From the NCBI GenBank assembly GCA_002189035.1, contig CM007991.1, positions 4,774,001 to 4,838,000 of the forward strand: a DNA stretch of 64,000 bases, in the 5' to 3' direction. This stretch comes from Utricularia gibba. Taxonomy: Eukaryota > Plantae > Magnoliophyta. Under the pieces are notes generated by a model, which made no database searches, was not told where the DNA came from, and saw nothing but the letters and a program-made list of their open reading frames with translations. Made by a program: the position numbers and the translations under genes. Each line of letters begins with the position of its first letter. The stretch's first letter is position 1. Below, piece by piece: positions 17,208 to 52,445 of this stretch.

Positions 17208-17309
17208 CTTTGATAAACAGAAATTTTAGCATATCGTTGCAATGAAAGCAAACTTCCAAATCAAATAAATTTATAGTCCCTAATCTACACAAAACACAAA
17301 TTTAGAAAA

Positions 17310-18426
17310 GGACTGCACTCAAGAGCATTGGACTGCACTCAAGAGCATTCTTAAGTACTTAACAAGGACATAAGACATGTTCCTTATTTATGGTGGTCAA
17401 GATCTCGAAATGGGAGAATATGTTTCCAATCTCATTTGACTTGACGTCTCAATCAAGATACATATTCATCCAAAATGGAGGTGCAGTCACATAGAAAAGT
17501 TCTAAACAAGACTGCTCATTCACAATGGAACTAAGATGTCCATGGAGTCCATTGGTATAGGATATATGATTTATTGGCTATAGTACAAGTGGGAGATTGT
17601 TGGTGTATGTGTTCTAGAGACAATCAATTCATTGACAAATCTTATCCTTTGATGTTTACCTTGAATTGTGATCAAATTTATATCACTGATAAAATCCTCT
17701 ACTTGATCTATGTGTTATAGAAATTATGATAAGATCATAATGTGAGATTCTTCAAGCACTTATAGTCAAGTTAAAAACTCCCTGGCTAGAGTATTTGTAA
17801 AATGAGGATATCACAAATACGGATAAGCTGGCACACATTAAGTTCCCTAAACTGTTTAGGCAATGGTTCCCACAATTGATGTAATGAGATTACTAGAACC
17901 TATGTGTGGGTGTCGACTTGAGAATCAATTTATTGCATGACTCATCTTCGAGATGCTACTATGGGAAGCGAACCAAGTGTTAGTAGCAAGATCTCGAATA
18001 TGACAGCCATGCAAGTAAGCTTAGACTTGAGGTCAACAAAGTTATCTTGATCTTAAGCTCACATTTTTGCTCATTACTAATGGGAGCCTAACCATGGCTT
18101 GCCTAGTATGGATGAGTAGGGATGTGACTCCTTAAGGTTGGAGATAGTTGATTGATCAATAAAGGATTCATCACTCATGTTAGCGATGAGATGATATCTC
18201 AAGTAATTGCATCAATAGTTGATTGACTCCAGTAAGTCCTAGGCCCAGGGTAATGACACTCGAATTGTTTGAGTACGTCATTGAGTGTTAGTGCTTGAAT
18301 GCAATTATAAGTTCGATACATCAGAAAGACACACACCCATGTTCTAGTATCGAATGAGATATAAGTATGATGAAAGCTGTTCATTGCATGGTGGCTGGTC
18401 ATGGAAAGGCTCAATCAGTTCACCTG
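17310..18426 (+). mobile_element. Angela-like copia 3' fragment 2: RT end, deleted RNase H, PPT, truncated LTR (17598-18426)
   Basis: HWTALKSILKYL..DMFLIYGG..NGGAV; LTR roughly 90% or more identical to 12334-13153 by eye. Confidence 0.88.
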
Positions 18427-21400
18427 CAATTCACCTGGTAACGGGAATTGAGAACATACCAGGATCCTTACATTTACGTGGCCTTCTCCTTTGAATGATA
18501 GCTGAAATGTTTTCAGTCAAAGGGATTACTTCTTGTTCCACCTTTGCTTTCTTTTTCGTATCACACAGGTCCTCCAGCAACTTGGCATACTTGGGGGCCT
18601 GTTCAATCATATTAAGAAGAGCAATAGAAACATTAACCTTCTTTATCATTTCCAAAAAAGTTTTCAATCCTTTCTTGTACTTGTTCCTTCTTCGAAGCCT
18701 CATCGGGAAGGGTGGTAGTATGACCAGTGGCTTGGTCTGAGGAATTTCGCTTGACTCCTTCTCTTGAACATCTTCGAGTGGCTTCAGAACATCATTGTTC
18801 TGCACTGGTTAGTCATCTTGATCCTCACCAATGATTTCTTCATCAACATCAGAATCACTGTCTATGACCTCCAACTCCTTTTCTTCCGACCTATCCACCT
18901 TGTTTGTGAACCATGGTTAAGGGTCTGGTAAGTCAGTTCCACTTCTCAGCGAGATGGCATTGATGTGCTCTGAATTCTACACTAGCTGTGATGGCAATCC
19001 TCCCCTTATTTCCAAGCAGTTCATTGTTTGCGCGAGCTGAGTAATCTAGCCTTGAATACTTGTGATTTGGCCCTTCATGTCCTTATGCTCAGCATGCATC
19101 TTGGAGGTGCTTTCAGCAAGTGATTTTACCATGGCCTCTAAACTATGATTCGGTTGGTACGGGACCATGTGTTATTCTAGAGGTCATGTTATCTACAATG
19201 GTTGAGGTGGTCCAGTGATAGTCTTCTTAGGAATACCAGGTGGGTTCCCTAATGATGGTGCTGGCTGTCTCCAGCGAACACTAGGATGGTCTCTTCGAGG
19301 CATCTGATAATTTCCATAGTTGTACGTCCCTCCTTGGTTCTTATAAAAAGCATTGATTTCTTCCATTGGCATTTCAGGAACTCTCGATCCAGAGTCAAAG
19401 TGAGATGGCAAAGCACTTGAGGTTCCTTGATAACCTTCCTTTTGTTGAAGCAAGGCTTGAAGACAAAACTTCAACGTGTCACTCATTGCTGCAAGTTGAG
19501 CCAATATTTCTGAGTTGTCCACTCCATAGACCACTTTTGCTGTTCCAATGTTTCCACTAGGTGATCTATGCGAGTTGTCATAACGATTGGCTGTGGAATA
19601 GGAATTAGCAACCATTTGTTCAATGAGTTTGTGGGCATCAACACTGTGATGGTTCGCTAATAATGATCTATTACAAGCGGCATCCATCTGTCCTCGGATC
19701 ATAGGAGTCAATCCTTCATAGAAGTGCTGCAAGATCTGGCCTTCAGTCAATCCATGCTGAGGGTAGGAGTTGCAGATTCGATTGAAACGATCATAGTACT
19801 CTTGCAAGTTTTCTCCTTCGCTCTGCATCATGGTTGTTAAGACTCTCCGTCCGGCTGAGCTCTTCCTAATGGTGCATTGCGATCCAAAAACCTTTGAACC
19901 ATCTGCTCCCAAGTTACGATAGATGAAGGTGGAAGACCATAGAGCCACTCCACACCTTGTTCAGTAAGACTGAAGGGAAATATTCTAAGTTTGACCTGAT
20001 TCTCCGTGGCTCCCTTGTTCAATAAGACGACGATAGGGGTCGTCATTTTTCCCTTCCATCAAACTTTAGAAGCATCTGGAATAAGTAAGGACGTAGCTTA
20101 TAGTCTTCTTCTGCATCAAAGATGACGCATAAGGGACGGTCTGAATGATTTGCAGTGATTTCTTCCTAGATGGTCCGTAGTGCTAGTCCACGATTAGCGG
20201 GAAGTAGTTGTTGGGTTTCTCTTAGACATCGTACGTCTCAAAAGTAGCGGAATTTTAAAATTTTGAGAAACCCCAAACGCAGATCTTGGAATACGGTATA
20301 CATCCGACGAAGGGATGTTCAAAGTATATTTCAGATGACTCCATTGTTCACCAACCGCCATTAGGAGACGACCTCTATGGTATCCACACGTGGAGCACTC
20401 CGTTGATAACCTTCTCAAGGCTCTTGAATGCTGGTCAAATTTCTTAGGTGCTAGTAGAGAAAAACGCCTCCTTGTGGATTAGTGTTAGAGAGCACGAAGT
20501 CCTTGGAGCAGATCTCAAGATCTAAATCTTTTTGATAGATATTTTGTGACATATCAAATCATATCTATATGAGATCTTTTATTTTGAGTTTAATCAATAT
20601 TAATCTCAAAATAATTCTTTATTTAATTTATCCACTTTACCAATTACATCTCATATAATTGTGTCATTCTATTTTATATCGATGAGTGACTCCACTATTG
20701 TGTGTGACCGTATAGGCTTCCTCAATCAAGGCCGTAATAATGGATTTATTAATTAAATCTTAATTAATCAAATCAATCATTATCGATAATGAGTGATGTC
20801 TAGCAACATATCATGATCCCCAAGATTAAAGAATAATCAGGTGAACTGATTGAGCCTTTCCATGACCAGCCACCATGCAGTGAACAGCTTTCATCATACT
20901 TATATCTCATTCGGTACCAAAACATGGGTGTGTGTCTTTCTGATATATCGAACTTATAATTGCATTCAAGCACTAACACTCAATGAACTACTCAAACAAT
21001 TCGAGTGTCATTACCCTAGGCGTAGGACTTACTGTTAGGCTTTGATGCAACTACTTGAGATATGATCTCATCGCTAACATGAGTGATGAATCCATTATTG
21101 ATCAATCAACTATCTCCAACCTTAAGGAGTCACATCCCTACTCATCCATACTAGGCAAGCCATGGTTAGGGTCCCATTAGTAATGAGCGAAAATGTGAGC
21201 TTAAGATCAAGATAACTTTCTTGACCTCAAGTCTAAGCTTACTTGCACGGCTTACATATTCGAGATCTTGCTACTGACACTTGGTTAGCTTCCCATAGTA
21301 GCATCTCGAAGATGAGTCATCCAGTGAATCGATTCTCTAATCGACACCCACACATAGGTTCTAGTAATCTCATTACGTCAATTGTGAGAGCCAATGCCTA

Positions 21401-22781
21401 AACAGTTTAGGGAACTCACTGTGTGCAAGCTTATCCGTATTTGTGATATCCTCATTTCACAAACACTCTAGCCAGGGAATTTTTAACTTGAACATAAATG
21501 CTTGAAGAATCTAACATTATGATCTCATCATAATTTCTATAGCACATAGATCAAGTTGAGGATTTTATCAATGATGTAAACTTGATCACAATTCAAGGTA
21601 AACATCAAAGGATAAGATTTGTCAATGAATTGATTATCTCTAGAACACATACACCAACAGTACTTGATTGTGTGCCAAAGAATTGATTCGATAAGGTTTG
21701 GAATGCTGTCCAGCTATGTTAGTTGCGTCTTCACTCATCTCTGGTCTTCTCGAGTATTCGGTTATAGGAGTAAGGAATTGCCTACCCTCCCTTACACTCT
21801 CTTGCAAGAAGGCATGGAAATAGCCCAATGTTGCTCTTCCTTGGACGTATGTGAGAATAAGTGGTCCTGCCAGCGTACCCTCACAGCCGAATTGCGCGCG
21901 TGTGGTCGAGTGTTGCCAATGACCCAATGAGTCCAAATACGAGGTCACTACCTGTCCATTGATCCTGAGGTACGGCCATAGAGAAAACATAGTTTTACTC
22001 CTGCCAAAAGGGCGTGAGTTGGTGCTCTCCACCTTGCTCCTCTCCAAAACTCGTGGAAATTGATCAGCTAACCATGAATCTTGAATAAGGGGATTGTTAC
22101 AGAAAGATTGCAACATAGTCGTGTGAAGACATATGAAATCCGTTCGGATTCAAAGAAGAGATGAGGATAAGCTAACGAAACATAGATCTGGAGGTGTTCC
22201 AACCCAGAAACGAAAGTTTCTAACCCTGAACGGCCATACAAACTAAAGAAAACGAAACAAGGTTCTAGAGAGAAGCTAGAGGAAAATCCTCTACAGAGAG
22301 AAACAAAAAGGGAAAACTAAACTAACTACTGCTTGTCTCACGTTTGAACAGAACTGAACTTTAATGAGAGTCTGAGATTTCGTGTTCCTGTGGTTCTGCT
22401 GAACTTGGGATGACTTGCAAGCAACGTCTGCTCTGACACTGGAACGCTAATAATGTTGCTTGTCAGAGACTCCCGTGTTCCGCACGTCAAGGCTCATGAT
22501 TAGGCATCTGCAGTCTTTCGAAAATCAAGGGAATGTCAGCTCGGGAAGATTCAATTTGTCGCCATCTGAAACCTTTTTTCTCTCACTTCCTGCCACGTGT
22601 GCACCTCTAGAAAAACTCAATTAAAACTAACAAAATTATTAGATAAAACACAAGATTTAGGATAATTACCCTAAACTAGATAAAAACCTAAATCTCATAT
22701 TATAGATTTCTAATTACACACTTTTAATCATATTTAGACATAAAAACAACTTAAGAAATAATAAGAAAATGACAATTATCA
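18427..22781 (-). mobile_element. Athila-type element C2: 5' LTR (21690-22781) and gag only, interrupted by a solo LTR
   Basis: LTR start TGATAATTGTCATTTTCT resembles 31466 TGTTAAGTGTCATTTTCT; gag QVKLRIFPFSLT..EWLYGLPPSSI..QSEGENLQEYY homologous to 33280-34800; LTR end and PBS are deleted. Confidence 0.85.
20209..21659 (-). mobile_element. Angela-like solo LTR (1451 bp) with 5-bp TSD
   Basis: Reverse complement of 12334-13726; TG..CA ends; flanks GTAGT (20204-20208) and GTACT (21660-21664), 4/5 match. Confidence 0.9.
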
Positions 22782-28011: not shown

Positions 28012-28319
28012 TATTATTGTATTTGACTTTGAAGTTTGGTTTCCATTAGAGACTACTTCAATTTAGTGAGTTTTAAACTTGCTAATGGTTTTTTATAACA
28101 AATAAATATGATTATCACTTAGTTATGTTATTTTATCGTAAATAAATTGATAATAATAATGAAAAGTAAATGTATTAATAGTTTATAAGAATTAAATTTG
28201 TAGGTCTAAATAAAAGTTTTCGGTACTAACGAAAAGAATATGTTGATTGAATAAATATGTAGTTAATATGAATAGGTTGATTAAAATTAAATTAATGTTG
28301 AGTAGCTGAAAATTAAATT

Positions 28320-28682
28320 GATAGTTGAAATGAAAATTAAATCTTTTAGTAAATTGAAATATAATTGATAAAAATAACATCGGCAGTTTAAATAAAAAGT
28401 AAATCACTTAGTAAATATAAATATACTTGATAGAAATAACATCGGTAGTTAAAATAAAAATTAAATCACCTAATAAATATAAATCTATTTAATAGAAATA
28501 ACATCGGTAGTTGAAATAAAAATTAAATCATGTAGTAAATATAAATGTATTTGATAGAAATAACATAGATTGTTGAAATAAAAATTAAATCATGTAGTAA
28601 ATATAAATATATTTGATAGAAATAATATCGGTAGTTGAAATGAAAATTAAATTACCTAGTAAATAAAAATAAGATTGATAAT
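28320..28682. repeat. 62-bp minisatellite, about 6 units
   Basis: AATAACATCGGTAGTTGAAATAAAAATTAAATCA.. unit starts at 28373, 28435, 28497, 28559 and 28621. Confidence 0.92.
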
Positions 28683-28778
28683 TTAAATTAATATGTGCAT
28701 GAAAATATTTTTTGAAGTTGAAAACTACACTTATATATATATATGTAACTACTACTCAATTTTCTATTGTTATAAGAA

Positions 28779-31300: not shown

Positions 31301-32763
31301 TGAGGAAACCATATGGATACATGAACCTTAAATAGGCAAACAGACTAAAGGTCTTGCTTCTTTTTCAACACATGGAGAAGTGTGTGAAGGTGGAGTCCCT
31401 AGATCATTTCATCCCATTGTTAAGCCTTTATCCGATAATGTTGGAAACAAGAAAAAATAATATACTGTTAAGTGTCATTTTCTAGTTAATCATTAGGTAC
31501 TATTAGGTGTTAATCTAGTATTAAGTCGCCCAAATTAGGAGTCTTACTATTAAGTATTTGATTTTTGTTAGAAAATTCCTATTTTCCTATTTTGCATATA
31601 TTTTATGTCTTTTTTCTCACACTTTGACCGAGATATGTCAGGAGACTGACGTGGAGTGTTGTAGGAGTATTGCAGGTGGTCAGACTCTGAGTTTTCGTGC
31701 CTTGTACGTGATTTGGAATGATTTTGGGCGGAAGACTGACACTGGTCAAGGCCCTTGACTTACAGCATGTCAGAGTCTGCAGTAATGATTGGGCACTAAC
31801 TTGCACGGAACGGAAAGCTGCTGGCACATACAAAACAGAAGGAATGATGGGAAGGGAACCCAAAGGAGTTAATGCACGAGGGGATTGATATAAAAGCCAC
31901 TTGGAGCACTTAGTTTCGAGCGTTGGAACTTTAGACTTTTGATAATTTCTCTTTATACTTAGAACTTTTGAGTTTCCAATTTCGTTTCTGTTTTCATGGC
32001 CCTTTGTAGCTAAAACCTTTTAGTTTTTGGGAGAAGATGAAATTTCCTTCCAAGTCCCTAGCAATATACTTGGTTCTTCGCTGAATTGATTTCGGATTTT
32101 GCATACTTCCACGCATCTTGTTGCAGTCTTTCTATAACGACTCCTAGTCAAGGTCAATGAGTAGCAGGCCACTCCTCACGGATTTTGGTGAAGATCAAGG
32201 TGAATAGCACCAACTCCAACCTTGCCGATTCGAGGGAAGTAGCGGATTGTTTGTGGCCTAGCTACCGCGACAGTGGACATGTTGTGACCTCGGACCGGCC
32301 ACTAGTCATTGGCAGTAGTTGAACACATGCATGCAATTCAATTTTAAAGGCAATCGAAGACAATTCTTTTGCCTTCCTAATCGTCCAAGGAGGAATCACA
32401 TGAGGCTATTCCCGTGCCCACTTGTCAATCAGAGTGTAAGGGAGAGTAGGCTATTCCTTGCTCCTATAACCATCTATTCGAAAGAAATCAGTGAAAACCG
32501 AGGCGACGATAGACAAAGGAAGGAGATGGAATCTCATTCCAAGGAACTGCGTCCCGTAGTCAAGGCCCATCACTTAGGTAGTAACTTCTATTTCTGCATC
32601 TTAAAAACCCCTTTTTACAAAACCGTGACATTTTGTGAAAGTTTCTTGCAAACACTTTTCACGAAAAACAACTCCCTGAGATCGATACTCGTACTAGGCT
32701 TTTCGTATTTTACGTTTTCTAAATATTTAAAATTTGTTGAGGAAACGACACACAACAAATTTT

Positions 32764-32781
32764 TGGCGCCGTTGCCGGGGA
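32764..32781 (+). other. tRNA-Asp primer-binding site
   Basis: Exact TGGCGCCGTTGCCGGGGA following the LTR end CACAACA. Confidence 0.95.
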
Positions 32782-33106
32782 GTTGTGTATTTTTGTGTTT
32801 AGTGTTGTGTATCATTTTTCTTTTTTCTTTCTTTCTTTCTTCTTGTTTTACTTTTATTTCCGTTTTGCTGCTGTTTTTCTCTGTTTTTATGCATTCAGCT
32901 CCATCGAAGGGTCACCGAAACTTGAGATCATATCGAGACATCTTGTGCCCTTTAGCTCCGGAGGATAAGCCCACATTTCTAGCGAAAAAGCGGGAACAAA
33001 CTTCAAATCTATCTCCTGACGAAGAAATGGATGCTCAAACACCTACTCCATGGAGAATAGGAGCAACAGCACCCTCAATTTTTTCCAGTTTTGCCAATCA
33101 CTAATC

Positions 33107-36100
33107 ATGGCCCAACACTAAGGACCATCAAATAAGAAATCACCACCAACCATGCTGACCGACCACTTTGTATTATTTTTTATGCGGAAGAGGACTTTGA
33201 GCTTCGCCCATATCTGTTCCAGACACTTCCTAAGTTCGTTGGGAGAGAAAATGACGACCTAAATCGTCATCTTAGAGAGTTGCACATGGCTTGTGCATCC
33301 ATGCGCCCAAAAGGTGCGATAGAGAACCAAGTCAAGCTGCGGGTCTTCCCTTTCAATCTCACTGAGCGAGCCTTAGAGTGGCTTTATGGACTACCACCAT
33401 CCTCTATTGCTACCCGGGAGCAAATGGTTCAGAAGTTTCTTGATCGATATGTGCCCCTAGGAAGAGCCTCCGCGGGAAGAAGAGCTTTAGCTACCATGCT
33501 ACAAAGTGAAGGCGAAAATTTGCAAGAATATTATGAAGTATTCAACCGAATCTGTAACACTTATCCACAGCATGGACTTACTGAAGGTCAAATTTTACAA
33601 CATTTTTACGAAGGACTGACCCCCATGATCAGAGGACAAATGGATGCTGCTTGTAATGGGCCATTACTAGAGAACCGCCACAGCGCTGACGCCCGGAGAT
33701 TGATAGAACAAATGGTTGCCAACTCTTATTCTACTACCAGTCGATATGAATACTCATACCGAGCACCTGGAGGAAATTCTCAGCCTGTAAAATCAATGCA
33801 CAAAGTGGATAATTCTGAAGTTTTAGCTCAACTTGCTGCTATGAGTGATACCTTGAAGCTTGGTTTCCAATCACTTCAACAACAAGGAAGGTATCAAGGA
33901 TCTTCAACCTCTCATCTTTCTGATCCATGACCTATGATACATGAGATGCCAGTAGAAGAGGTGAACGCATTTTTCCAGAACCAAGGAGAAACCTACAATT
34001 ACGGAAACTACCAAATACCGCGAAGAGATCATCCTGGTTTCCGCTGGAGACAACAAGTACCTCCTGGTCAAGCCCCATCAATAGGGAACCCTTCTGCTGT
34101 TTCTAAGAAAACTCTCACTGCTCTGCCTCAACCTTTACAGATCACTGAAGTTCCAGATCAACCCCTTGTTCCTTATCAGCCAAATCATAATTTGGAGTCC
34201 ATGGCGAAGTCCCTTGTCGAGAGCACCACCAAAATGCATGCTGCACAAAAGGACATGGATGGACGAATTACAAGCATGCAAACTCAGATTACCCAGTTGG
34301 TTCAAGCCATGAACCAACTGGAGACACAAGGAGCACTGCCATCCCAACCAATGAAGAACCTAGAGCATATCAATGCCATATCTTCAAGAAGTGGGAAGGA
34401 TCTTCCAGAACCTTAACCATGGTTCATGACTAAGGTGGACAGATCTATAGAAAAAGAATTAGAAGTTTTGGATGACGATGATGACGTGGATGAAGAGATT
34501 ATTTCAGAGAATCCTGATAATTCTCCAGTCCAGAACATTCTTGTACTAACGCCACTTGAACAAGTGAAGGAGAAGGAGCCACAAGAAGTTGATCAACCCA
34601 AGTCTCTAGCCATTCCTCCTCCTTTTCCTATGAGACTTCGAAGGAAAAATAAAGACAAACGTGGACTGAAAGCTTTTATGGAGGTGGTGAAGAAGGTGAA
34701 CGTGAAGATTCCCTTGCTGGACATGATAGATCAAGTGCCGAAATATGCAAAAATGTTAAAGGACTTGTGTGACCCAAGAAGAAGGAAAAAGTGGAAGAGG
34801 TAATTCCTTTGACTGAAAATATTTCTGCAATTATTCAAAGAAGGCTTCCACGAATTTCAGTGGCCATGTGTGATTTAGGAGCATCGGTTAATGTTATGCC
34901 TAGATCCCTTTATCTTTCTCCTGCATCTAAGTTAGTGTTGTTTGTCAATTATCTGATAGATCGCATGTGAAGCCTGATGGTAGAGTTGATGATGTGTTTG
35001 TGCATGTTAAAGATTTGATTTTTCCTGCTGACTTTCTAGTTATTCCCATGGAGAGTGAAAATCCCATGATTTCGGAATCCATCATTTTGGGACGACCGTT
35101 TATGCCTACTGCAGGCACCAAAATTGATGTCCAAACTTGCACAATTTCCCTACACTTCGATGGACAGGTGCTGGACTTTAGCTTAGACAAAGCCATGCAA
35201 TATCCGAAATTTGCTCAATATCTACATCTGACACAGATGTAGAACACTTAGCGATGGTCCATGAGCAAGATCCCTTGCTAAAATGCCTCACTAAAAACTT
35301 TAATTCTGATCGTATTTCTTTTCATGATTCTGAACTTTTAAGTTATTTTGATTATTTTCCTGAAAAACTTGAATTTTCTGACGTTGCTTTTCTGAGTTTA
35401 GAAATGCCTTAGAAACTGCTGATTCCTTCCGTTATTCATGCCACATTACTAGAGTTAAAAACACTGCCTGAACATTTAAAATATTTATTTCTGGGCGAAA
35501 ATGATACTTTACTTGTTATTATCTCTAGTACACTAACTATAGAACAGGAGGAAAAACTCAAAAGTGTGCTCCAGGAGCACAAACAGGCAATTAGGTGGAC
35601 ATTGGCAGATATCAAAGGAATAAGCCCCTCCATATGCACTCACCGCATCTATTTGGAGAAGGGAACAAAGCCAATTCGCCAACCCCAAAGGAGATTGAAT
35701 CCACCTATGATTGAAGTAGTCAAGAAGGAGATTCTGAAATTGTTGGATGCAGGTATAATCTACCCTATCTCTGATAGTGAGTGGGTTAGCCCTGTGCAGG
35801 TTGTCCCGAAGAAAACAAGTATCACAATCATGGCCAATGACCAAAGGGAACTTCTACCTACCAGAGTGCAAAATGGCTGGCGAATGTGCGTAGATTACTG
35901 AAAATTGAATGCAGCCACCAAGAAGAACCACTACCCACTTCCATTCATTGACCAAATGTTGGAAAGTCTTGCTGGAAGGAGTCATTATTGCTGCTTGGAT
36001 GGATACTCCGGTTTCCATAAAATACCCGTGACTCTTGAGGACCAATCTAAGGTTGTTTTCGTTTGCCCTTTTGGAACTTTTGCTTACCATAAAATGCCTT

Positions 36101-37975
36101 TTGGACTTTGCAATGCACAAACAACATTTCATTGATGCATGGTTAGTATTTTTTCTGAATATGTTGAAAATATTTTAGAGGTTTTTATGGATGACTTTAC
36201 GTTTTATGGGAATAGCTTTGATGAATGTCTTGCTAATTTGTCATGGTAGAACAAGGTATCATTTTAAAACATGTTGTTTCCCAAAAGGGAATTGAGGCCG
36301 ACAAGACCAAGATTGAGGTAATCCAAAAATTACCTTATCCCACTTGTGTGAGAGATGTACATTCTTTCCTTGGACATACTGGTTTTTATCGTAGATTTAT
36401 TCAAGACTTTTCGAAAATTGCATCTCCCTATGTGCCTTGTTACATAAGGATATTGAGTTTCATTTTGATAGCCATTGCATGAACGCTTTTGATGTTTTGA
36501 AAGAGAAGCTTGTTTCAGCTCCCATTATTCAGGCTCCAAATTGGAGTCTACCATTTGAACTAATGTGTTATGCAAGTGATGTAGTTCTAGGTGCGGTTTT
36601 GGGACAAAAGGTGGAGAAACAATCCCATGTTATCCACTATGCATCCAAGTGCCTTGATGATGCCCAAAAGAGCTACACCACTACAGAAAAACAGTTGTTA
36701 ACCATTGTATTTGCCCTAGAGATATTTCGATCTTATTTGCTAGGAGCCAAAGTCATAGTCTATTCGGACCATACCCCATTGAGATATCTCCTCACCAAGA
36801 AGGATTCGAAGCCTAGACTCATTAGATGGATTTTGTTGCTTCAAGAATTCGACTTGGAGATCAAGGATAAGAAAGGATGCGAGAATTTAGTTGCAGACAT
36901 CCTCAGCCGCATCACTTTTGGAGAAAAATGAAGTCTTATCGATGACAGCTTCCTAGACAAACACCTATTCATGATCCATGATGAGAGTCCCTGGTATGCT
37001 GATATCGTAAATTTTGTAGTAACTGGACAGTTTCCTACAGATTTCCAGCACTACCAGAAGGAGAAATTGAGGAGTGACAGCTACCTTGCGGTGGACACTT
37101 TGGTGCAAAAGCTACTGCAAAGAAGGTCATGGAGGCTGAATTTTATTGGCCTACCATATTCAAGGATGCCTACCTTCATTGCAAGGCGTGTCCAAATTGC
37201 CAACGAGGAGGAAATTTGGGATACAAGGATCAAATGCCCCTTCAACCCATTATCATGTGTGAGATCTTTGATGCATGGGGCATTGACTTCATGGGACCAT
37301 TTCCACCTTCTCAAGCGAAGCTCTACATCCTTCTTGCTGTAGATTATGTTTCCAAATGGGTGGAGGCCATTGCTTGTGAAAGGGATGATGCCAAAACCGT
37401 GGGTAATTTCTTGACTAACATTTTGTTTCCTAGGTTTGGACATCCAAGATTATTATTTTAGATCGTGGCACTCATTTCGTGAATCATGATATCAAGAGTG
37501 CATTGGCCAAATATGGAGTCAACCACCGCCTATCCATAGCTAGACATCCTTAAACAAATGGCATGGCGGAAGTATCCAATAGAGAGGTGAAAAGGAATTG
37601 CATCACAGGGCATACTGGGCCGTCAAATCATGCATCCTGACTAGTGATCAAGCTGGAGAGAGTAGACTCTTAGACCTAAATGAGCTGGAGGAAATTCGCC
37701 TCAATGCCTACACTAACCAGCTCTTTCACAAGGAAAAGGTAAAACGCTTCCATGATAGTAACTTACATGGGAAGCAATTTTTAGTAGGTCAAAAGGTTCT
37801 CTTATTTGATACTACATTGAAAATCTTTCCCGGTAAATTGCTTTCTAAGTGGCTTGGACCTTATGAAGTTGTGAATGTTTTTCCCTCTGGTGCTGTTATT
37901 ATTCTTTCATTTGAGACATGGAAAAGCATTAAGGTGAATGGACACCGACTGAAGCCATTTTATGAGAATTTTTAG
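33107..37975 (+). pseudogene. gag-pol polyprotein with many stops, frameshifts and deletions
   Basis: gag QVKLRVFPFNL; protease AMCDLGASVNVM (~34865); RT SEWVSPVQVVPKK..WRMCVDY..YCCLDGYSGF..MPFGLCNA; RNase [17 protein letters not shown]; integrase [21 protein letters not shown]. Confidence 0.95.
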
Positions 37976-38279
37976 CTGTACAGTGTGTGCAGCTTACTCC
38001 TAGTTGAGGCTCATTAATAGGTGTCACAGTCGGCCAATGACTGTAAATTGGCGTTGCATGGGAGGCAACCCATGACTTTAATTTCGTAAACGTTACTCTT
38101 TCCTCGTTTTTATCACCCACTACTCCAAGTTACTTTATTTTCACCTGCCCCATGCCACCACTTACTCCCTTAACCGTTTGTACACTCAATCTCCTTTTTA
38201 TCTTTTGGAATTCCCATTTTACTGACCATTACCCCACTTCGCTATTGTAACTTGTGTTTCTCCGAATTTTCTGCTCACC

Positions 38280-39956
38280 ATGTCTAGACGCCCCACATCT
38301 CCGGTTACCCGAAGTGCAAGTGCTGCTAAGGCAGCAACTAGGAAGCGTGAACCTGCCGCAACTGGACCATCCCGAAGGACCCAGTGTCACCGCAGCAACA
38401 ACCCAGCAGAAGCTTCTGTGCTCACTGAGCATGAGCCATCTCTAGGCGTCGCGGCGGAGTCTGTTCCGATTGAGGTCACACCTCTGACCATTGTGTCTCC
38501 AAAGCTATACCTGGAATGGTACCCAGTCCCTGTTCCTGCTGCTGATGCACCTGAATCTTCAATGCCAAATTCCCCAGCAGCAATTTCTGCTCCCTACAGC
38601 CCGCAGCCCCCACAACCGGAAGAAATTGCTGGCACAAAAGGTCAGACAACAGGAATTCCTATTATTCACTCATCCCCTTCTCCAGTACAGGAAGAAGATT
38701 CCCCTGAAGAGATCACCATTGATGAAGAAGTTGATCTCTTGATTTCTGAAATGCAGCGTGCTGCTAATGAAGGGCCATGCCTAGAGTTCCTTCCTGGAGA
38801 ATAGGATGTAGATGAAGCAACTCAGCCCACACAACGAGGCAAAGGGCAGCGCGGTCGCATAAAATTCTGGCAAGACCGAGCCTTGGAGTCCCCTACCTGG
38901 ACCCAACTGAAAAACACCGTGAGATTTTCAGATAAGAACGCTCAACTTTTATTTAATCTCTTAACCTCACGTAGAATTCTTTTTGATTTTAAATTGCATA
39001 TGCCTACTTTGGTGCATCTGAATCTACTTGCTGATATTAACCGTTTATTTGATGCTTCTCCTGAGTGGCGTAAATTTTCTGAAATTAGCTTGCCAGTTTA
39101 TCCCAAACTTGTGTTTGAATTTTATACAACTTTTGTGTTTGAGGATGTGGCTGGAAATCCCCTTTTTGAGGAACTCATTTCTTTTCACCTTGGAGGCAAA
39201 AATTTTCACATGTCTATAAATGATTTTAATGTGGCTTTAGGCTTTGTTTCTAAATCTGATTTAGCCACTACTCATTACCTCCAAGCATTCTATGATTATC
39301 CTGAACATTTTTTAATGTGTTGAATGCCTATGCATCCATGTCTGTCTGTGAGCCCCATATTCTGTACGCAAACTCAAGGCCCATTACTTGAGGGCCCTGC
39401 TCTTTTAGTGTTGAACAGATATTTGGGAGGCTATTACAGCGCAACCCGACAAGGCACTAGCATCATTCCCAAGGTTATTGTGTTCTTTCTGTGGGCGATG
39501 ATGAAGAAGCTCCCCATCAATTTGGGAATGTGGATTGCAACTCAAATACACTCCATCACCGCCAAAAATGAAAGAGTGCTCCTCTTTGCTTCCCTCATCA
39601 CCAAGCTTGCCCAACACCTCAAAGTTAACCTTGACAAACAGACCCCTCAGGTAGATAATCATTTCCGTTATCTAGATTTGGATGACTTGTTTTCTTTCAA
39701 CTACCTGAAGAAGGTTGAGGGGAAGGCTGTTTTCGTGCAAGCGGGTATCAAGAGTACCATCACTTCCATGCCCCCCTCCATTGTGAACCCATATGGTGCA
39801 CCAACAGACGTTCCTTTGAGCACTGCACCATCAAGCCCCACCAAGCACACCCTCCTGCTAGCTATTCACAGTCTCCAGGAACAGGTTTCTGCGCTTTCCA
39901 TGAAGCTGGACACTCTCATGGCGTCTGCTTCACACTCTGACATGCCCCATGACTAA
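38280..39956 (+). pseudogene. Athila ORF2 (env-like, plant transposon protein)
   Basis: One reading frame of 559 codons with two internal stops (38802-38804, 39321-39323); VYPKLVFEFYTT..ISFHLGGKNFHMSINDFNVALGF motif; lies after integrase. Confidence 0.8.
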
Positions 39957-40779
39957 GGTACCCTCCGCTACACTTGATGATGAGGACAACCTCAAAATTA
40001 AGTGTGGGGGAGGAGTTTACGTTTCTTTTTATTTTCTAGTATTTTTTGGGTATTAGGACTTATATGTTGATTTTTTTCTGTTTTCGTACCTCATGTTTAG
40101 TTTTTCCCCTTTGTGTTTTTGTTTGTGAAAAAATCCCCACTATGCTCCTCAAGTACATTTCCTTTCATGAATAAGGCTAGAATTTTTAGTATTGATCATG
40201 CTTAGGTTCATGAATTCCTTGCTGCAAGGAAAATACTTCAATTATTTTTCTTTCTAGATATCAAGGTTTTGTTACATGATTTAGGAAAGACTATACCATG
40301 GCTATGACTATATTTTCATTCCTTGTATATATTATATTGTGAATAAATTTTTGCTGCTCATATAGTGACCAGACCGAGACAAAAAGAAAAAAAAAGAAGA
40401 AAAAAATATTAGGAGTGCCAAAGGTAAGGATGTTTGGCGAAACCGTGGTAATTATCACACATAAGGTTTCATAATCCAAATATTCTTCCCCAAAGCGGGG
40501 ACCTCTATCTGAAAAAAAAAAAAAGGTCTTGCGTCACTATAGTGTATGTTCTTTATTGTTTTTACCTTGATGATGTTAGTGTATAAGTAGTCATTGGTTA
40601 AGTCTTTAACTGATGCATGCAAACTTGAGTGGCTTGCCTTAATTTGATTGAAGAATAGAAAAAGAATTGACGTAAATTCCTGCTGTAAGATGAATGTACC
40701 TTAGTAATGCATCATGACTTAGGTTCTATCCTTTTTTGTGGATTGCTATGATTTTCATACTTGAAGACAAGCATGATTT

Positions 40780-40794
40780 AAGTGTGGGGGAATA
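40780..40794 (+). other. Polypurine tract (a second copy at 39998-40016)
   Basis: AAGTGTGGGGGAATA directly before the LTR TGTTAA; TTAAGTGTGGGGGAGGAG follows ORF2. Confidence 0.85.
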
Positions 40795-41191
40795 TGTTAA
40801 GTGCCATTTTCTAGTTATTTATTAGGTATTATTAGGTGTTAATCTAGTATTAAGTCGTCCAAATTAGGAGTCTTACTATTAAGTATTTGATTTTTATTAG
40901 AAAATTCCTATTTTCCTATTTTGTATATATTTTATGTCTTTTTCCTCACACTTTGATCAAGACATGTTAGGAGACTATCGTGGAGTGTTGCAGGAGTATT
41001 GCAGGTGGTCACACTCTGAGTTTTCGTGCCTTATACACGATTTGGAACAATTGTGGGCAGAAGACTAACATTGGTCAAGGCTCTTGACTTACGGCATATC
41101 AAAGTCTGCAACAATGATTGGGCGCTAACTTTAATTTTTCCCACCTCCACTGCATGTAACCCAACAATACAGAAACTACTGGAACTAAGGA

Positions 41192-44674: not shown

Positions 44675-46130
44675 TGATGTGCTACCAAAAAGCCGAGTCA
44701 GAAAGGCCGTGTTGGTTAGGGAATGGAGAGTGAGGGACTGTGTTTTATTTAATCTTTGAGTAATATCTTGGAATGAGAAAAATGTCTTAGATCCTTGTTA
44801 ATCCATATTACAATGTTATTTCCCTTATTTATATTAGTATTATTCAGGGTAAATACATTAAAGAGGGACGAATTCAACCAAACCTTTATTCAATATGTAT
44901 TTCTAAAATTAGTTTTTTTCAATTTCTAGGATCTTTTTCTTTTTTGGCTCGCGGGGCGTGTCCCCAGCCTCCCACCCCTTCGCCTCCATTCGTTTTTCTC
45001 ATTTTCTGTATCCCTTCTCCAATGTCACCATGTGAGTTTGTTTGTTTTTCTCTTCTGTTCTGTTCTTTTTTTTTCTTTTTTTTTTTTTTGGCTGAAGATG
45101 CTTTCTTGTTGAAATTATTCTTATAACGGGTCTGCACCTGCCACAAAAACAGGAAGGTCTTTCATGGTTTTGGGAACACTTGTGCGGATTTTCAAGAGAG
45201 TCTATGTTTGGTGAAGGAACTAAATGGTGATTCATCATAGATTCTACATCTTGAAACCAAGCCAGTGTTGTTCCTAGTTTAGGAACTAGAGTTATCAGTC
45301 TTATTGGTAGTGTTTGTTGGGGAGACTAAGCAGCTAATGGGACTCTTGTTCCCATTTCATCAACGGTGACTCATTATTTCAATGAATCATTTCTTCGGAC
45401 AATGGAATAAGATTCCTAAAACATTTCTTGGCAGACTAGGGTATGGCTATCTTACATACATTTTTTGTTCAATTGATTATTTTTGAGTATTTTTCTATTC
45501 TATTGATAGTAATAAAGAGAATCAAATTCATTCTATACTCGATGGGGACCAATGCGCAATGGCGATTGAGACCATTTTTATGAAGAAATGTGGAGATCAA
45601 TAGTACTTATTCGTAGAAATTTGATTTTTTTATCTTTTTTTTTTAAAATTCGTATACCACGTGAATATTGTTATAGCGATAAAATGAACCGTATAAAGAT
45701 AATGACTATGTTTTGTATTACTTATAAATTATTTTAAGTAATTATAAGTTATTTATAATATATAAAAGTGTTTTGTTTATTGGCTATAAGTGATTTTAAA
45801 TTATTACTTTAAGTTAATTATAAGTTGATTCTAAAAATAGAATAAACTTATTTTTCTTTTCAAATCAATTGAATTCTTGTAATTACTAAAATACTTGTAT
45901 TTATTATACCTATTTAAAATCAAAAATTGATTACATTTATGTTTGGATTTCCGTTTTCTCCATTCTCTCCCCTTACGATGATTATCAACAGTTCTGAAAA
46001 AGTGTTTTTATTTGAATTCACTCACTTGTGTTATTTAGATGTTGAAATTGAGTATTTCACATGTAAGTTTTCACATACATGCTTGATTATTATGATTTTG
46101 ATAATTATGTTGATAGTGACTTTACCTACC

Positions 46131-46366
46131 TTGTTTACTGAACTTGTTTACCACTATTAGTCCGAGCTTAGACTAAGACCTACTGTTATCCGAAATCTTG
46201 CATCTACTAAAATACTTAGCAAGCACAAGCTCTTCGTGATCGACCCCGACATCCACTATACAAGTTTTCTAAATTTGTATTTTGTGTAGATTAGGGATTA
46301 TAAATTTATTTGATATGGATTTTCTATTTTTACTTGCAACGATATTAGGAAAATTTCCATTTATCA
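46131..46366 (+). mobile_element. 3' end fragment of a family-B LTR
   Basis: Reverse complement of 9703-9950; includes GCAAGCACAAGCTCTTCGTGATCGACCCC and ends TTTATCA. Confidence 0.88.
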
Positions 46367-46955
46367 CAACGATAACTAATGAATCAACTAGACCTAGTGT
46401 TCTATTTTAGCATATAGCTAAAAAATCTCAAAGAAGAAAGATCGAGGAGTTGCTTGACATGAATTGTGTTTGATTCAAAATGAGTTTGTGTTTGTGTGGT
46501 GTTAATGCAAAAACAAAGACAACACCAAATTTAAGTGGAAACCCCGAAGGGAAAAATCACGGGCAAAACGTCACTCAAAGATGAACGGATTTTGGGGAAA
46601 TCCAATTACAACTACAAGCCATACTCATAAACTCAACTCACACACCCTAATCTTAGAACTCAACCTCCTTATATCTCGTAAATGGAGGTTAGTCTTTAAT
46701 GAAGAGATGGTTACCAAAATTTCGTAATTGATTGCTTATCTTAAACATGAGTCATAGCTTGTGGCTTGAAATAAGAAGAAATTGCCCCAACTAGGAAAAT
46801 GATGTTTTGTTCATTCCACAATGACTTCAATTGATCTCTCATCAATATTTCAACAAATTCCCCCCTTGATGGGAGATCACCGTGATCTCTCAAACAGAAT
46901 AATTCAATGAAGACTAGAGCCAGTTCAAATGAGTGACGTTTCCTCATGCCATTCA

Positions 46956-47220
46956 TCATTTCCGCTGAAGACCCATCAGGTCCAACAATTTTTGGAACAT
47001 GATGGAAGGGAGTGGCTTGGTTAAAGCATCTACTGCTCTCGTATCAAGGATATCCCTAATAAAGTGGTACCTTACATCAATGTGTTTCACCCTACTGTGA
47101 AACATGGGGTCCTTAGCCAAAGAGAGAGCGCTTTGGCTATCGCATACAATGCCTCTCATGGCCTCTTTCTTGTGTAGTTCAGAGAACAAGCCCTTCAGCC
47201 AAATTGCTTCCTTCACTGCC
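46956..47220 (-). pseudogene. Copia RNase H, 3' part
   Basis: AVKEAIWLKGLFSEL..VCDSQSALSLAKDPMFHSRVKHIDVRYHFIRD..DALTKPL. Confidence 0.92.
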
Positions 47221-47695
47221 AAAGCACAGTAGGTCCTTGGCCATCATAAGAGCGCTCAGCAAGGAACTCAACGCTCTCATGGTCTCTTCAGGTAAAGGGT
47301 CCTTGCTGTCCCGAATTTCTTCAAACATTGGCGTCAGAAGCTTCAGTGATCTAGCCAGATTCGTATATTGCTTCTTGACGCTGCTTCTATACTCAGATAT
47401 TGCAGATATTTCACCCACCAAATCGACTAGACTGAGCGATAAGGCGACTCGATCATCCTCCATTATCCGATCATTGACGTAGTGAGAGTTCAAGCTGCTG
47501 CCACAAATCCTCCATTATCCGGTGACGATTTGGAGCTCATCGTGGTGCACGAGACCAGCTAACTATCCGTTTCAATCCTCAACAAATCTCCGAACACTCA
47601 CCCGGATGCTGCAGTCAACGGGAAAACCCGAAAAGCTTAGCCAGATTAGCGCAAGCTGAGAGGTGGTATTGGTCGGGGTCCATGTCTCTCTCCTT
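47204..47695 (-). pseudogene. PUB13: Captured 5' fragment of a U-box/ARM E3 ligase gene (PUB12/PUB13/SPL11 class); CDS part 47204-47463, the rest putative 5' UTR
   Basis: MEDDRVALSLSLVDLVGEISAISEYRSSVKKQYTNLARSLKLLTPMFEEIRDSKDPLPEETMRALSSL..AKDLLCFGSEGS resembles Arabidopsis PUB13 N-terminus (..SLIDVVNEIAAISDYR..KKLCYNLARRLKLLVPMFEEIRES..GSKIYL) from memory. Confidence 0.85.
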
Positions 47696-49603
47696 TCCCC
47701 ATTTCTTGAGGAGTTTTTCGATCAATAGCAGTAGAGGGTGATCTATTAATGATAAAAGTGGCATAAGATGCTGCTTCTGCCCAAAACTTCTCATCCAGCT
47801 TAGCAGTGATCAACATACTTTGAACTCTTTCCATGATGGTTCGATTCATTCTTTCAGCCACCCCATTTTGTTGTGGGGTGTATCTATTTGTCTTATCTCT
47901 CAAAATTCCAGTAGCCTTGCAGAGTTCTTCAAAATCACCTAAACAAAACTCAAGGCCATTGTCTGTCCTAAGTTTCTTAACCTTCATATTTGTTTGATTT
48001 TCAATCATTATCTTGCACACTTTAAAAGTCTCTAAAGCCTCTGATTTATGCTTCAAAAAGAAGGTCCACAACTTTCTAGAGTAATCATCGACAATACTCA
48101 TCATATATACTGCTCCTCCCATAGATGGGCTATCTGTTGGCCCCCATAAATCAAAATGGATATAAGCTAAGGGGTGTGGGCTGTTGTGTATTCCTTTAGA
48201 GAACTTGATCCGTTTACTTTTTCCCAACACACAGCACTCATAGAAGTCCAGTTTACCTATTTCCTGCTCTTTTATCAAGCCTCTAGAACTTAATTCTTTC
48301 AGTCCTTGCTCACTCATGTGAGCTAGCCTATAATGCCACAATCTGGTTGTGTCACTCTCTGTTCTATCAGTGGTAATGTTAACATGACCCTTCTCCACTG
48401 TGCCCTATAATATGTAGAGGTTGCTTTGATTCCGAACTACTTTCATTACCACTAGTTTGCCCTTACAAACTTTGAGAGTTCCATCACAACCAGAAAATTT
48501 GAGACCTTTTTCCTCTAATGTACTTAGGGAAATTAGGTTTTTCTTGAGCTCCGGCACATGTCGAACATCAGTGAGTTATCTCACTATCCCATTGTGCATC
48601 TTGATTCTGATGTTGCCTATACCAGCAATCTTTCTTGAGGTGTTATCACCCATCACAATTTCTCCTGTCTCATGCCTTTCATAGGTAGAGAACCACTCTC
48701 GATTGGGGCATACATGGTAGGTGCACGCGCTGTCCAATATCCATGATTCACTTAATAGAGATAAGCCTTGTGACATTAGAGATAAGTGGGCTCCATTCTG
48801 GTTTAAACACTCAACAGCCAATACGTATCCATCATCATCACCATAAATGACATTGGCTTGACCATTATTTGTGTTCGTTGGCTTCCACTCTTTTTTCTCA
48901 GCATGAGCTTCTTTATTCTGAAGCTTATAGCAGTCCTTTTTTATATGCCCCTTTTTCTTGCAATAATTGCAGATTTTGTTGCGATGTCTACTCTTTGATC
49001 TATCTATCTTCTCATTTGATTGCTTTATTTCTTGAGAAATGTTTTCAGCTGCTCCTTTGACTCAAGCCATTCATAAACGTGATCTAAGCTGAGGGAGGTC
49101 TTTGAGTAGATGATGCTGTCTCTGAAAATTTCATAGGATGCAGGGAGAGAACACAATAGAATTAGAGCTAAATCTTCAAAGTCATACTTGACTCCAGCAG
49201 TATCCAAATCCACAATCATATCCTTAAATTTCGCAACATGTTCATCTAGAGAACCACCCTCTTGCAACTTGTGTGTATATAACCTTTTCTTTAAATGGAG
49301 CTTACTTGCCAAGGTTTTAGCCACACAAATTTGTTCCAGTTTGTCCCAGAGATCCTTGGTGGTCTTCTCTTTCGAAACGGCTGGCAACATGTCAGTAGAG
49401 AGATATAAATGGATGGTGGATCTTGCCTTCCTATCTCTGATTTCATTTTCCTCACTTGAAAAATTCTTGTTCATCTTCTCCTTTCCATCAATTACATCAT
49501 CCGGGTCTAGTTGTGTAAGCACAGCTTGCATCTGCATCTGCCATGTGACAAATCTTGTATTTTTCTTATCCAACTTTTGGATATCACACCTTACATTAGA
49601 CAT
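47696..49603 (-). pseudogene. Copia gag, protease and integrase, frameshifted; integrase cut after KTPQEM
   Basis: gag DRKARSTIHLYLS..LALILLCSLPASY; protease WILDSACTYHVCPNREWF; RLWHYRLAHMSEQGL; LRTDNGLEF..TPQQNGVAERMNRT. Confidence 0.95.
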
Positions 49604-50539
49604 ATCCGATGATCGGCTTCTTCACTAAACCTGTTTATATCAAAATCACCACAAACACAAAGTATGGCAGCAATAACACTCCACAAAAAGAACCACAACA
49701 CATAGATATTCACAATATCAATCCAAAAGTGAATATCACAGCCACAAGCTACAACCTGCTCTGATACCAATTGTTCTATTTTAGCATATAGCTAAAAAAT
49801 CTCAAAGAAGAAAGATCGAGGAGTCGCTTGACATGAATTGTGTTTGATTCAAAATGAGTTTGTGTTTGTGTGGTGTTAATGCAAAAACAAAGACAACACC
49901 AAATTTACGTGGAAACCTCGAAGTGAAAAAACCACGGGCAAAACGTCACTCAAAGATGAACGGATTTTGGGGAAATCCAATTACAACTACAAGCCATACT
50001 CATAAACTAAACTCACATACCCTAATCTTAGAACTCAACCTCCTTATATCTCAAAAATGGAGGTTAGTCTTTAGTGAAGAGAGGGTTACCAAAATTTCGT
50101 CTTGGAAGAGCTTTTCTATAGCTGAATACCGACACATCAGCTATAGGGTTGTTGACAAATAGAAAGCAATCAAATCAATTGATTGCTTATCTTAAACATG
50201 AGTCATAGCTTGTGGCTTGAAATAAGAATAAATGGCCCCAACTAGGAAAATGATGTTTTGTTCATTCCACAATGACTTCAATTGATCTCTCATCAATATT
50301 TCAACACCTAGGATAATAAGTTCAGAGCTTGGTCTTGCTTCACCATCAAGAAGTGAAAGAGGGCTTTGTCCCCAAGTTTAACTCAAACACAGCTCCTTTT
50401 TGTTTTGAGTGTGGTGGTGTCAAAAAAAATATCCAACAAGCATTAGCTCTCCCTAAAAAGGGATGATCCCATCGCACCTTACCCAAGGAAGTAAAGCACA
50501 CAGTGCTACTCTGTTATGAACAAAGATATCTTTGGAGGG

Positions 50540-50830
50540 TAATGTGGATTATCCTGATCTCACGATTGTGAAATTATCTAGTGCTCAACAAGGTCTAGAG
50601 TGAAGAGTTAATGCTAGGGATCAAGTGATTGAATGAGAATTGAAGGCTCTCTATGTCAGCTCTCCATACACCAAACATGTGAAAGCCAATGGAAAGAAAC
50701 CTGGACCAAGGCAAAGAGAATAAGAAGAAAGACAAGGAAAAGTTTTCTCCATGTAGACATTGCAAACAAAGCTCTCATTATTAGAATTATTCCTATTGGA
50801 GGCGAGATGTCCAGTGCAAAATATAGCATA
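50540..50830 (+). pseudogene. Copia gag fragment with zinc-knuckle region
   Basis: KKKDKEKFSPCRHCKQSSH..YWRRDVQCK resembles the copia FPPC.HC..GH..CW.RPD.KC motif. Confidence 0.55.
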
Positions 50831-50862
50831 GCGACCTTGTTTGCTATCAATGTCTCCCCCTT

Positions 50863-51231
50863 AGGAACACATCTCAATACTTTTGTACAGTACTGCTGCT
50901 AACCAACCCGGCTTTTAAAAATTTTAAAATATTTTTGCTACTCAAGAACACATCTCAAAGTTTATTCAATATACCAAATGTATGTGCTACTCAAGAACAC
51001 ATCTCAAAGTTTATTCAATATACCAAATGTATGTGCTACTTAAGAACACATCTCTAAGTTAAGAACACATCTCTAAATTAAGAAAATATATTTGAGATGT
51101 ACAATACTTTTTCTACTTAAGAACACATCTCAAAGTATAACATGGTCTATGTGCTCTTGAAAATATATTTGAGATGTACAATACTTTTGTATTAATGCTG
51201 CTAACCAACCCGGCTTTTAAAATTTTAAAAA
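50863..51231. repeat. Compound repeat array built on GAACACATCTC
   Basis: Motif at 50865, 50946, 50995, 51044, 51063 and 51121; 49-bp tandem unit; ~55-bp direct repeats at 50875 and 51179. Confidence 0.92.
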
Positions 51232-51399
51232 ATATATAAAAGTATATAGATAAAATATAAGTACATATTTATAAGACCCTAATCTCACCTCTCACTCTCC
51301 CCTTTTCATGCTATCTCCTCTTATGATGCTCTCAAAGTCTTATACTTTACATACTCACCCTGTGAAAACTATTTGAAAGCTAGATTAGGCAACTTGAGT

Positions 51400-52445
51400 T
51401 ACACTGAGTAAGCTTGTTGTGAACTTTGGTACATGACCGTGTCTGAAATTTCCAGAACAGCCAAGTGGGTTGACAAGTTTACAGTACCTTTACCCACAAC
51501 AACAAAATAGCTGCCATCACCAATTCAAACTGAGGACTTGTAAGCAAGAACCAATGATAGAAATTGAAATCTATCCCCAGCCATGTGAGAGGTGAAACCA
51601 GAATCCACCATCCATTGTTCCACAGAAGCCTAAAAGCACTCTTCCATGACAAACACATGTTAGATCATCCACGGGAGTGTCTTCATCATAAAAGACATTG
51701 TTGACTTGATTTTCTTGATTAAAATTCTTCATTGTGGATATAGACGTGGTGCACACCCTGTCAACATGCCAAAGAGTCTTGCACTTTCCATAGAAAGCAT
51801 CCGGTCGATAAAAACAATATTCACTAGAATGATTTGATTTTCTACAAAACTAGAAAGGTGGAAAACTGAGCCTTTGTTTGATAGGCAAACACTTGACTTT
51901 TCCCCCAGTTTTGCTGACAGATAAGGTCTTTTTATTCCCTTTAAAATTACTCATCTTATCAGCATGAGCCACAAGAGCCTTTTCCACACCAGCCATGTGA
52001 GACTTATCTAAGGCCAATTACTATTATGGTCAATTACTGACCACATCCATGATGCAATCTATATAGCCTTTTAGGAAATCAGACTCAACCATGCGTAAAC
52101 ATTCAAATTGTCTTCTTAAGGTGAAGACTCGCATGTACTTGGTGCAATCATTCCCTTTGAATTCTTCCTCAATCAGATACCATGCCTCACGAGCAGTTTC
52201 AGCCACCATGATCCTTGTAAAAACCGAATCGTCCACAGCTTTATGAGTCAAACTAAGAGCATGATCCCTCCTTACTAAATGTTCTTTGTGCGCTATTACT
52301 TGAGCCGGAGTAGCATTGGTCCTCAAAAGAGGTGCCTCACTTTCTTCAATAGCATCCCAAAGCTGCTGCCCACCTAGATAAGTTCACATTTTTACAGTTC
52401 AGGCATGATAAAGCTCTCCATTGAACCATGGAGTAGCATGAGAGT
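51400..52445 (-). pseudogene. Copia gag-protease remnant
   Basis: PWFNGELY..LWDAIEE..HKAVDDSVFTRIMVAETAREAW..LRRQFECLRM; WMVDSGFTSHM at ~51580-51620. Confidence 0.85.

Follow-up and report, generated by a model that had tools for sequence, protein, structure and literature searches.

A defective Copia retrotransposon of Utricularia gibba with a PUB13-type gene fragment in place of part of pol

How did a piece of a plant U-box ligase gene come to lie between the long terminal repeats (LTRs) of a retrotransposon, and does the resulting chimera spread? The question arises from a 64,000-nucleotide stretch of Utricularia gibba DNA (contig CM007991.1, positions 4,774,001 to 4,838,000; hereafter the window, with positions counted from its first letter), in which a Ty1/Copia LTR retrotransposon occupies positions 46398-50306 on the minus strand. 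Host gene sequence is found between its LTRs in place of internal transposable element (TE) sequence: an insert of 496 bp (47204-47699), which lies in sense orientation relative to the TE and carries the beginning of a PUB13-type gene. The initial annotation of this locus, made without database searches, had described a Copia element whose reverse transcriptase (RT) was replaced by a PUB12/13-class fragment, and had proposed that the chimera inserted as a unit and may belong to a mobile family. The features of the element and of its insert are collected in Table 1.

Table 1. Features of the Copia element and its captured fragment, in order along the window (3' and 5' in element sense)
Feature	Position	Strand	Basis
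Target-site duplication CCTAG, left copy	46393-46397	n/a	Identical 5-mer at the other end, read directly
3' LTR, 458 bp, TG..CA ends	46398-46855	-	LTR-LTR alignment
Polypurine tract adjoining the 3' LTR; reverse complement AAGGGGGGAATT	46856-46867	-	Read directly
RNase H, C-terminal 88 residues, to the pol stop codon	46956-47222	-	tblastn against Copia reference elements
3' junction zone, up to 16 nt compatible with PUB exon 1 and with Copia A-x-KEAIW codons	47204-47219	-	DNA comparison with L001, L002 and L008 versus L010 and L012
PUB13-type coding sequence with an open frame, from the ATG through codon 86 of the UND (U-box N-terminal) domain	47206-47463	-	Pfam PUB10_N, 79% to Sesamum PUB13, tree
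5'-leader-like PUB sequence, ~236 bp	47464-47699	-	Collinear local alignment upstream of the orthologue ATG
Integrase: gag_pre-integrase and catalytic core only	47700-48398	-	Pfam, integrase alignment, tblastn
Protease / Pol beta-barrel region, two stops inside	48405-48821	-	Pfam Pol_BBD 1e-18 (48576-48821) and 0.012
gag (Retrotran_gag_2), CCHC zinc knuckle after frameshift	48900-49603	-	Pfam 3.5e-30 (49025-49603)
Primer-binding site, tRNA-iMet type; reverse complement TGGTATCAGAGC	49758-49769	-	2 nt from the 5' LTR, read directly
5' LTR, 535 bp, TG..CA ends	49772-50306	-	LTR-LTR alignment
Target-site duplication CCTAG, right copy	50307-50311	n/a	Read directly

The Copia element and its missing pol segment

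Assignment of the element to Ty1/Copia is based on two direct LTRs with TG..CA ends, a 5-bp target-site duplication (TSD), a primer-binding site (PBS) at the 5' LTR and a polypurine tract (PPT) at the 3' LTR, together with a Copia gag and with the order of protease, integrase, and an RNase H tail downstream of integrase. The PBS sequence TGGTATCAGAGC is presumably the motif of plant Copia elements that prime with initiator tRNA-Met. The two LTRs differ by 13 substitutions over 458 aligned sites (2.84%; Kimura two-parameter (K2P) distance of 0.029), as well as by one 1-bp indel and one 77-bp indel. Given commonly used plant substitution rates of 0.7-1.3e-8 per site per year, we infer from this distance that integration took place about 1-2 million years ago. 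The two LTRs differ most in the 77-bp segment confined to the 5' LTR (50101-50176), which could represent either a deletion from the 3' LTR or an insertion into the 5' LTR after integration.

Three-frame translation reveals that the gag-pol frame is broken by a frameshift near 49025 (from frame 0 to frame 2) and by stop codons near 48575 and 48402. Integrase is recognized by the Pfam models gag_pre-integrs (2.5e-14) and rve (1.4e-13; 47646-48398), and the remnant corresponds in tblastn to residues 2-211 of 340, with about 130 C-terminal residues gone. In the Copia integrase alignment, homology stops at ..KTPQEM (base 47700), where relatives run on with W-S-G..LRVFGC. On the far side of the insert, the open reading frame (ORF) at 46956-47222 matches no Pfam model; by tblastn it aligns with the very C-terminal end of pol in three Copia reference elements taken from public contigs (E of 3e-19 for L011 and L012 and 2e-15 for L010) and represents residues 110-209 of a 209-residue RNase H ORF. 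RVT_2 queries from related Copia elements match nothing in the element (E > 0.6). Because of this partial coverage of integrase and RNase H and the empty RVT_2 search, about 1.75 kb of pol is missing, a segment that takes in the C-terminal part of integrase, the whole of RT, and the larger part of RNase H; the distance from the end of integrase to the start of the RNase H tail is 1743-1760 nt in the references versus approximately 0.5 kb here (47700 to about 47219). With no RVT_2 match and with one frameshift and two stops in gag-pol, the element is a dead, defective, non-autonomous derivative, and this copy cannot move by itself.

The insert is a replacement of this segment rather than an insertion into it, since the Copia flanks are not contiguous and the insert has no TSD or terminal inverted repeat (TIR) of its own: no inverted repeats of at least 40 nt were detected in 45000-52000, and no short direct repeat abutting the junctions was seen by eye. 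The captured piece is out of frame with both the integrase and the RNase H tail, and the integrase frame reads 23 codons into the insert before reaching a stop.

The structural items of the initial annotation were all located where it had placed them, with a few corrections. The LTRs, the CCTAG duplication, the PBS, the PPT, gag, and protease were all recovered, as were an LTR divergence of about 3% and the complete absence of RT, and a later independent insertion of the PUB piece, which had been named as the alternative, can be set aside on account of its flanks and ends. Integrase, which had been listed as present, retains its first ~211 of ~340 residues and lacks its C-terminus. A sense insert of about 490 bp in place of RT was also found, although its end lies at 47699 (496 bp) instead of 47695, and the RNase H tail, the gag-pol frameshift and the two stops had gone unmentioned.

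Identity and state of the captured fragment

The insert ORF passes the Pfam model PUB10_N (PF25368) with 43.3 bits against a gathering threshold of 32.6 (E of 6.9e-11). The closest proteins are 'U-box domain-containing protein 13' from Sesamum (79% over 86 residues) and PUB13 proteins from other Lamiales. In a search of representative proteins, the alignments start at residue 1 of the homologues and extend to about residue 88. In a maximum likelihood (ML) tree of the 86 residues, the fragment is placed within the Lamiales PUB13 clade (support 95/88) and, inside it, with Sesamum and Orobanche (88/88), on a tip branch of 0.33 compared with a median of 0.098 (3.4-fold). P0013, a full-length PUB13-like relative from Nicotiana, has a U-box and ARM repeats, and the nearest solved structures of its U-box include chains deposited as PUB12. 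On these homologies, assignment of the N-terminus encoded by the insert to the PUB12/13/SPL11 class, in line with the initial annotation, is correct.

The N-terminal UND domain of this class is present, whereas the U-box and ARM repeats are not: when the full-length P0013 was used as query, it matched the window with residues 1-88 only (47200-47463). Because the U-box and ARM repeats are absent, the captured piece cannot be a ligase and can have no substrate-binding activity, and we would therefore describe it as a gene fragment and not as a functional family member.

Comparison with contig loci carrying PUB orthologues (L001-L009, of which L008 is from Sesamum) helps to place the fragment in its gene. 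In the orthologues, an intron of about 3 kb separates exon 1 from a small exon, after which come the exons for the U-box and the ARM repeats. The captured piece ends with ..FGSEGS, and orthologue exon 1 continues for four more codons; its end is located there because orthologue ORFs (the short ORF matches) diverge just after GSKIYL, where the next codon opens with the GT of an intron. The fragment end is 12 nt short of this first intron. Homology to the orthologues at the DNA level runs from 47467, 4 nt upstream of the ATG, to 47204. The sequence farther upstream aligns locally with orthologue upstream regions, in collinear order and at matching distances from the ATG (z of 4.2 for L001 and 5.1 for Sesamum L008 against shuffle controls), which lends modest support to its being leader sequence, and its GC fraction is 0.508, compared with 0.488 for the whole insert and 0.398 for the remaining internal region. 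We read 47464-47699 as probably most of a PUB 5' leader. As TATA-like motifs in the orthologues sit upstream of the mapped end of the insert, the capture seems to leave out the promoter, the boundary being approximate.

A global MAFFT alignment of the leader part with orthologue upstream regions was unconvincing because the sequences are too diverged. The captured leader also contains a 15-nt direct repeat (47455-47469 and 47507-47521, including the ATG) that flanks 37 nt of no matched source, and this arrangement creates a short upstream ORF. The repeat region might reflect another stutter in template switching, or it might already be part of the parent gene. A 52-bp unit was considered as a diverged tandem duplication and rejected by eye, as only the 15-mer repeats and the 37 nt resemble the following coding sequence at about chance level.

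All 86 captured codons are open. The fragment departs from the consensus at 2 of the 37 columns with conservation of 90% or more (leave-one-out controls: mean 1.3, maximum 4) and has six residues unseen in 53 relatives (controls: mean 2.2, maximum 8). Against Sesamum-group orthologues, synonymous sites are saturated and nonsynonymous divergence (dN) is approximately 0.15. Because this saturation precluded a dN/dS estimate, changes were counted by codon position: relative to three Sesamum-group exon-1 sequences, fragment-specific changes are distributed 12:9:31 over positions 1:2:3. The excess at third positions and the few changes in conserved columns thus indicate that most of the divergence arose under purifying selection in a working gene. 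This pattern fits a capture that was recent relative to the divergence, in keeping with the young LTRs, and would not fit long neutral decay inside the TE. The captured piece itself is most likely an inert passenger.

The fragment lies in the Sesamum/Orobanche subclade at the protein level, yet it is saturated at synonymous sites against L001, L002, and L008. The host lineage, or the parent paralogue, is distinctly diverged from Sesamum at the DNA level.

Probable origin and possible mobility of the chimera

At the 3' junction the element reads, in its own sense, TTTGGCAGTGAAGGAAGCAATTTGG, where PUB orthologues have TTTGGCAG[C/T]GA[A/G]GGCAGCAAG and Copia relatives have ..AAGGAAGC..TGG or ..GCA...AAAGAAGCTATTTGG, coding A-x-KEA-I/L-W. 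Up to 16 nt could be common to both sources, and a conservative estimate is about 5-11 nt, judged on orthologues (73% DNA identity) and distant Copia relatives (~56% protein identity) in place of the true parents. Judged in the same way, the 5' junction (47699/47700) shares one to three G residues at most.

LTR-mediated retroposition, in which RT switches to a host mRNA and back, leaves internal ORF replacement, partial mRNA copies, and junction microsimilarity as hallmarks, the last with a median of 6 bp in Drosophila (PMC5131818), and has been reproduced with yeast Ty1 (assays cited in PMC5131818). Because the captured piece looks like a partial 5' transcript segment, replaces ORFs between the LTRs in sense orientation and may share microsimilarity with Copia at one junction, we consider that the chimera probably arose by such a double template switch during reverse transcription, of the type represented by Bs1. 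A host PUB mRNA would have been co-packaged with Copia RNA in a virus-like particle. During minus-strand synthesis, RT would first have passed through the 3' LTR, the PPT, and the RNase H tail. It would then have switched templates to exon 1 of the PUB mRNA, at a stretch resembling the Copia A-x-KEAIW codons, and proceeded toward the 5' end of this mRNA before returning to the Copia RNA within integrase. The chimeric cDNA might then have been completed normally and integrated, giving rise to the CCTAG duplication.

Several points weigh against this model. The fragment ends 12 nt before intron 1 and so covers no splice junction that could attest an RNA intermediate; the length of the 3' microhomology (~5-11 nt, upper bound 16) is inferred from the proxies given above, and the 5' junction shares one to three bases at most. 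Moreover, the position of the insert's 5' end relative to the transcription start is only roughly estimated, the model gives no account of the 37 nt within the leader repeat, and neither the window nor the collections searched, which do not include the host genome, contain a second copy with the same junctions.

These searches bear also on the possibility of an amplified non-autonomous family to which the chimera would belong, mobilized in trans by an autonomous Copia relative and spreading the PUB13 piece, with 24-nt small interfering RNAs (siRNAs) acting on the parent gene. Such a family is possible in principle, as the element retains what is needed in cis (both LTRs, PBS, PPT, and leader), secondary retroposition of such chimeras is on record (PMC5131818), and siRNA cross-talk from captured fragments has been documented for maize (bioRxiv 10.1101/777037), with suggestions of it for rice and sorghum (PMC3726574), but we regard it as doubtful. 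A single copy is present in the window, in which no second element copy, parent gene, other PUB piece, or empty-site paralogue was detected. The protein and contig collections contained no host genome, and the absence of family members from them therefore says little; within them, five element ORFs have no exact match among 15 billion proteins, a word search with the 104-residue PUB ORF returned nothing above 77% identity by local alignment, and a word search with the integrase ORF spanning the 5' junction gave a best match of 58% and no family member. Metagenome scans (at the protein level and with the exact 25-nt junction) and a scan of viral contigs likewise revealed no related chimera. Three short PUB matches followed to their contigs as candidate sister chimeras (P0145, P0146, and P0147; loci L001-L009) were rejected, since they proved to be the first exon of normal PUB genes in which exons for the U-box and ARM repeats come next.

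An action of siRNAs on the parent PUB gene is speculation. In its full form, a trans-mobilized family would be subject to RNA-directed DNA methylation and yield siRNAs against the leader and exon 1 of the host PUB13 gene, coupling TE silencing to the expression of PUB13, a gene that negatively regulates FLS2 signalling and cell death; we find this very improbable.

It is also conceivable, though in our judgement unlikely, that the swap took place at the DNA level after integration, when a double-strand break or deletion in an intact or already deleted Copia copy was filled with sequence copied from the PUB gene or its cDNA by a microhomology-mediated or synthesis-dependent route; in that case the locus would be a unique scar with no history of mobility. 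Microhomology at a junction would also suit end-joining repair, no splice junction marks an RNA origin, and no sister copy was found. The LTRs and TSD do not help here. The initial annotation had taken LTR similarity and the clean TSD to imply that the chimera inserted as a unit, an argument that fails because a later internal replacement would leave both untouched; they date integration only and are silent on the timing of the internal change. On the other hand, a filler of 496 bp from an unlinked gene is, as far as we are aware, unusual in plant end-joining repair. The fragment moreover has the look of a transcript's 5' end, with leader and exon 1 lying in sense orientation, and the neat swap of a pol segment is a signature of RT template switching (PMC5131818).

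Finally, although TE-rich regions are prone to misassembly, a chimeric join of Copia and PUB reads is scarcely credible, as it needs two independent clean sense joins within one element that has matching LTRs and a perfect TSD, and the fragment bears its own substitutions and a 52-bp rearrangement, which are typical of an aged genomic copy.

Relation to known captures and surroundings in the window

The locus represents a clear but ordinary gene-fragment capture, an event type that is well documented: captured gene fragments are common in plant LTR elements and number 672 in rice and 1,343 in sorghum (PMC3726574), and maize Bs1 is an example of gene capture by an LTR element (PMC5131818, PMC13317346). 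Like the chimeras attributed to LTR-mediated retroposition (Tan et al. 2016, PMC5131818), the element carries what looks like a partial copy of a host mRNA between its LTRs in place of internal ORFs, may show similarity at one junction, and resembles a pseudo-LTR element that retains cis signals. Those chimeras were, however, verified against known parents and often span exon-exon junctions, whereas no intron position is covered here and hardly any bases are shared at the second junction. Bs1 and the rice and sorghum captures (PMC13317346, PMC3726574) are likewise plant LTR elements without RT and with cellular gene fragments inside, but Bs1 combines pieces of three genes in an expressed hybrid ORF, while the present element has one piece that is out of the gag-pol frame. 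Pack-type DNA transposons and Helitrons also bear host gene pieces and may yield gene-matching siRNAs; in contrast to the present element with its LTRs, PBS, PPT, and 5-bp TSD, they take up their gene pieces as DNA and are bounded by TIRs or Helitron ends. The siRNA idea has precedents in bioRxiv 10.1101/777037 and in the small-RNA analysis of PMC3726574.

With regard to the captured gene, the first 86 residues (UND) are homologous to those of the PUB12, PUB13, and SPL11 ligases (PMC4449551, PMC5952000, PMC4450066); the nearest relatives are annotated as PUB13 and combine UND, U-box, and ARM parts, of which the fragment lacks the last two. The gene is a known regulator of immunity and cell death, and epigenetic cross-talk with the parent is conceivable, although nothing here shows it. 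What the locus offers is a cleanly delimited capture by a plant Copia element, both of whose junctions are located to a precision of a few bases; one junction suggests template switching guided by microhomology. Such cases show retrotransposons shuffling host exons, and specialists may find this one neat rather than surprising.

Other repeats are found around the element. The left flank (46110-46366) matches, at 85% and in inverted orientation, a repeat end at 9703-9953 that is also present at 17211-17309, so the Copia element landed in or beside another repeat. About 830 bp to the left of the element, 45496-45564 on the plus strand matches the Rfam Plastid-clpP 5'UTR RNA family (62.4 bits against a gathering threshold of 55), and this segment has the appearance of a small nuclear insertion of plastid DNA (NUPT-like); the stretch 45500-45999 is very AT-rich (GC fraction 0.236). 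On the right side of the element, at a distance of about 620 bp, a 49-bp tandem repeat is present in approximately five copies (50927-51150; 63-94% to the reference copy), and a second tandem array with 62-bp spacing and at least six overlapping copies lies at 28248-28732.

A Ty3/Gypsy-like LTR element occupies 31466-41094, with an LTR pair of 91% identity spaced 9329 bp apart and with Retrotrans_gag (33280-33927) and RT_RNaseH (36437-36928) domains; the ORF at 39324-39953 shows a weak resemblance to Transposase_32, below the Pfam cut-off. A repeat of about 1 kb occurs three times (12270-13306, 17534-18426, and 20687-21659), two copies being direct and one inverted, with 94-96% similarity. Between these copies lie ORFs for an integrase core (13918-14766) and for gag (19196-19948), and the trio look like nested or rearranged LTR elements.

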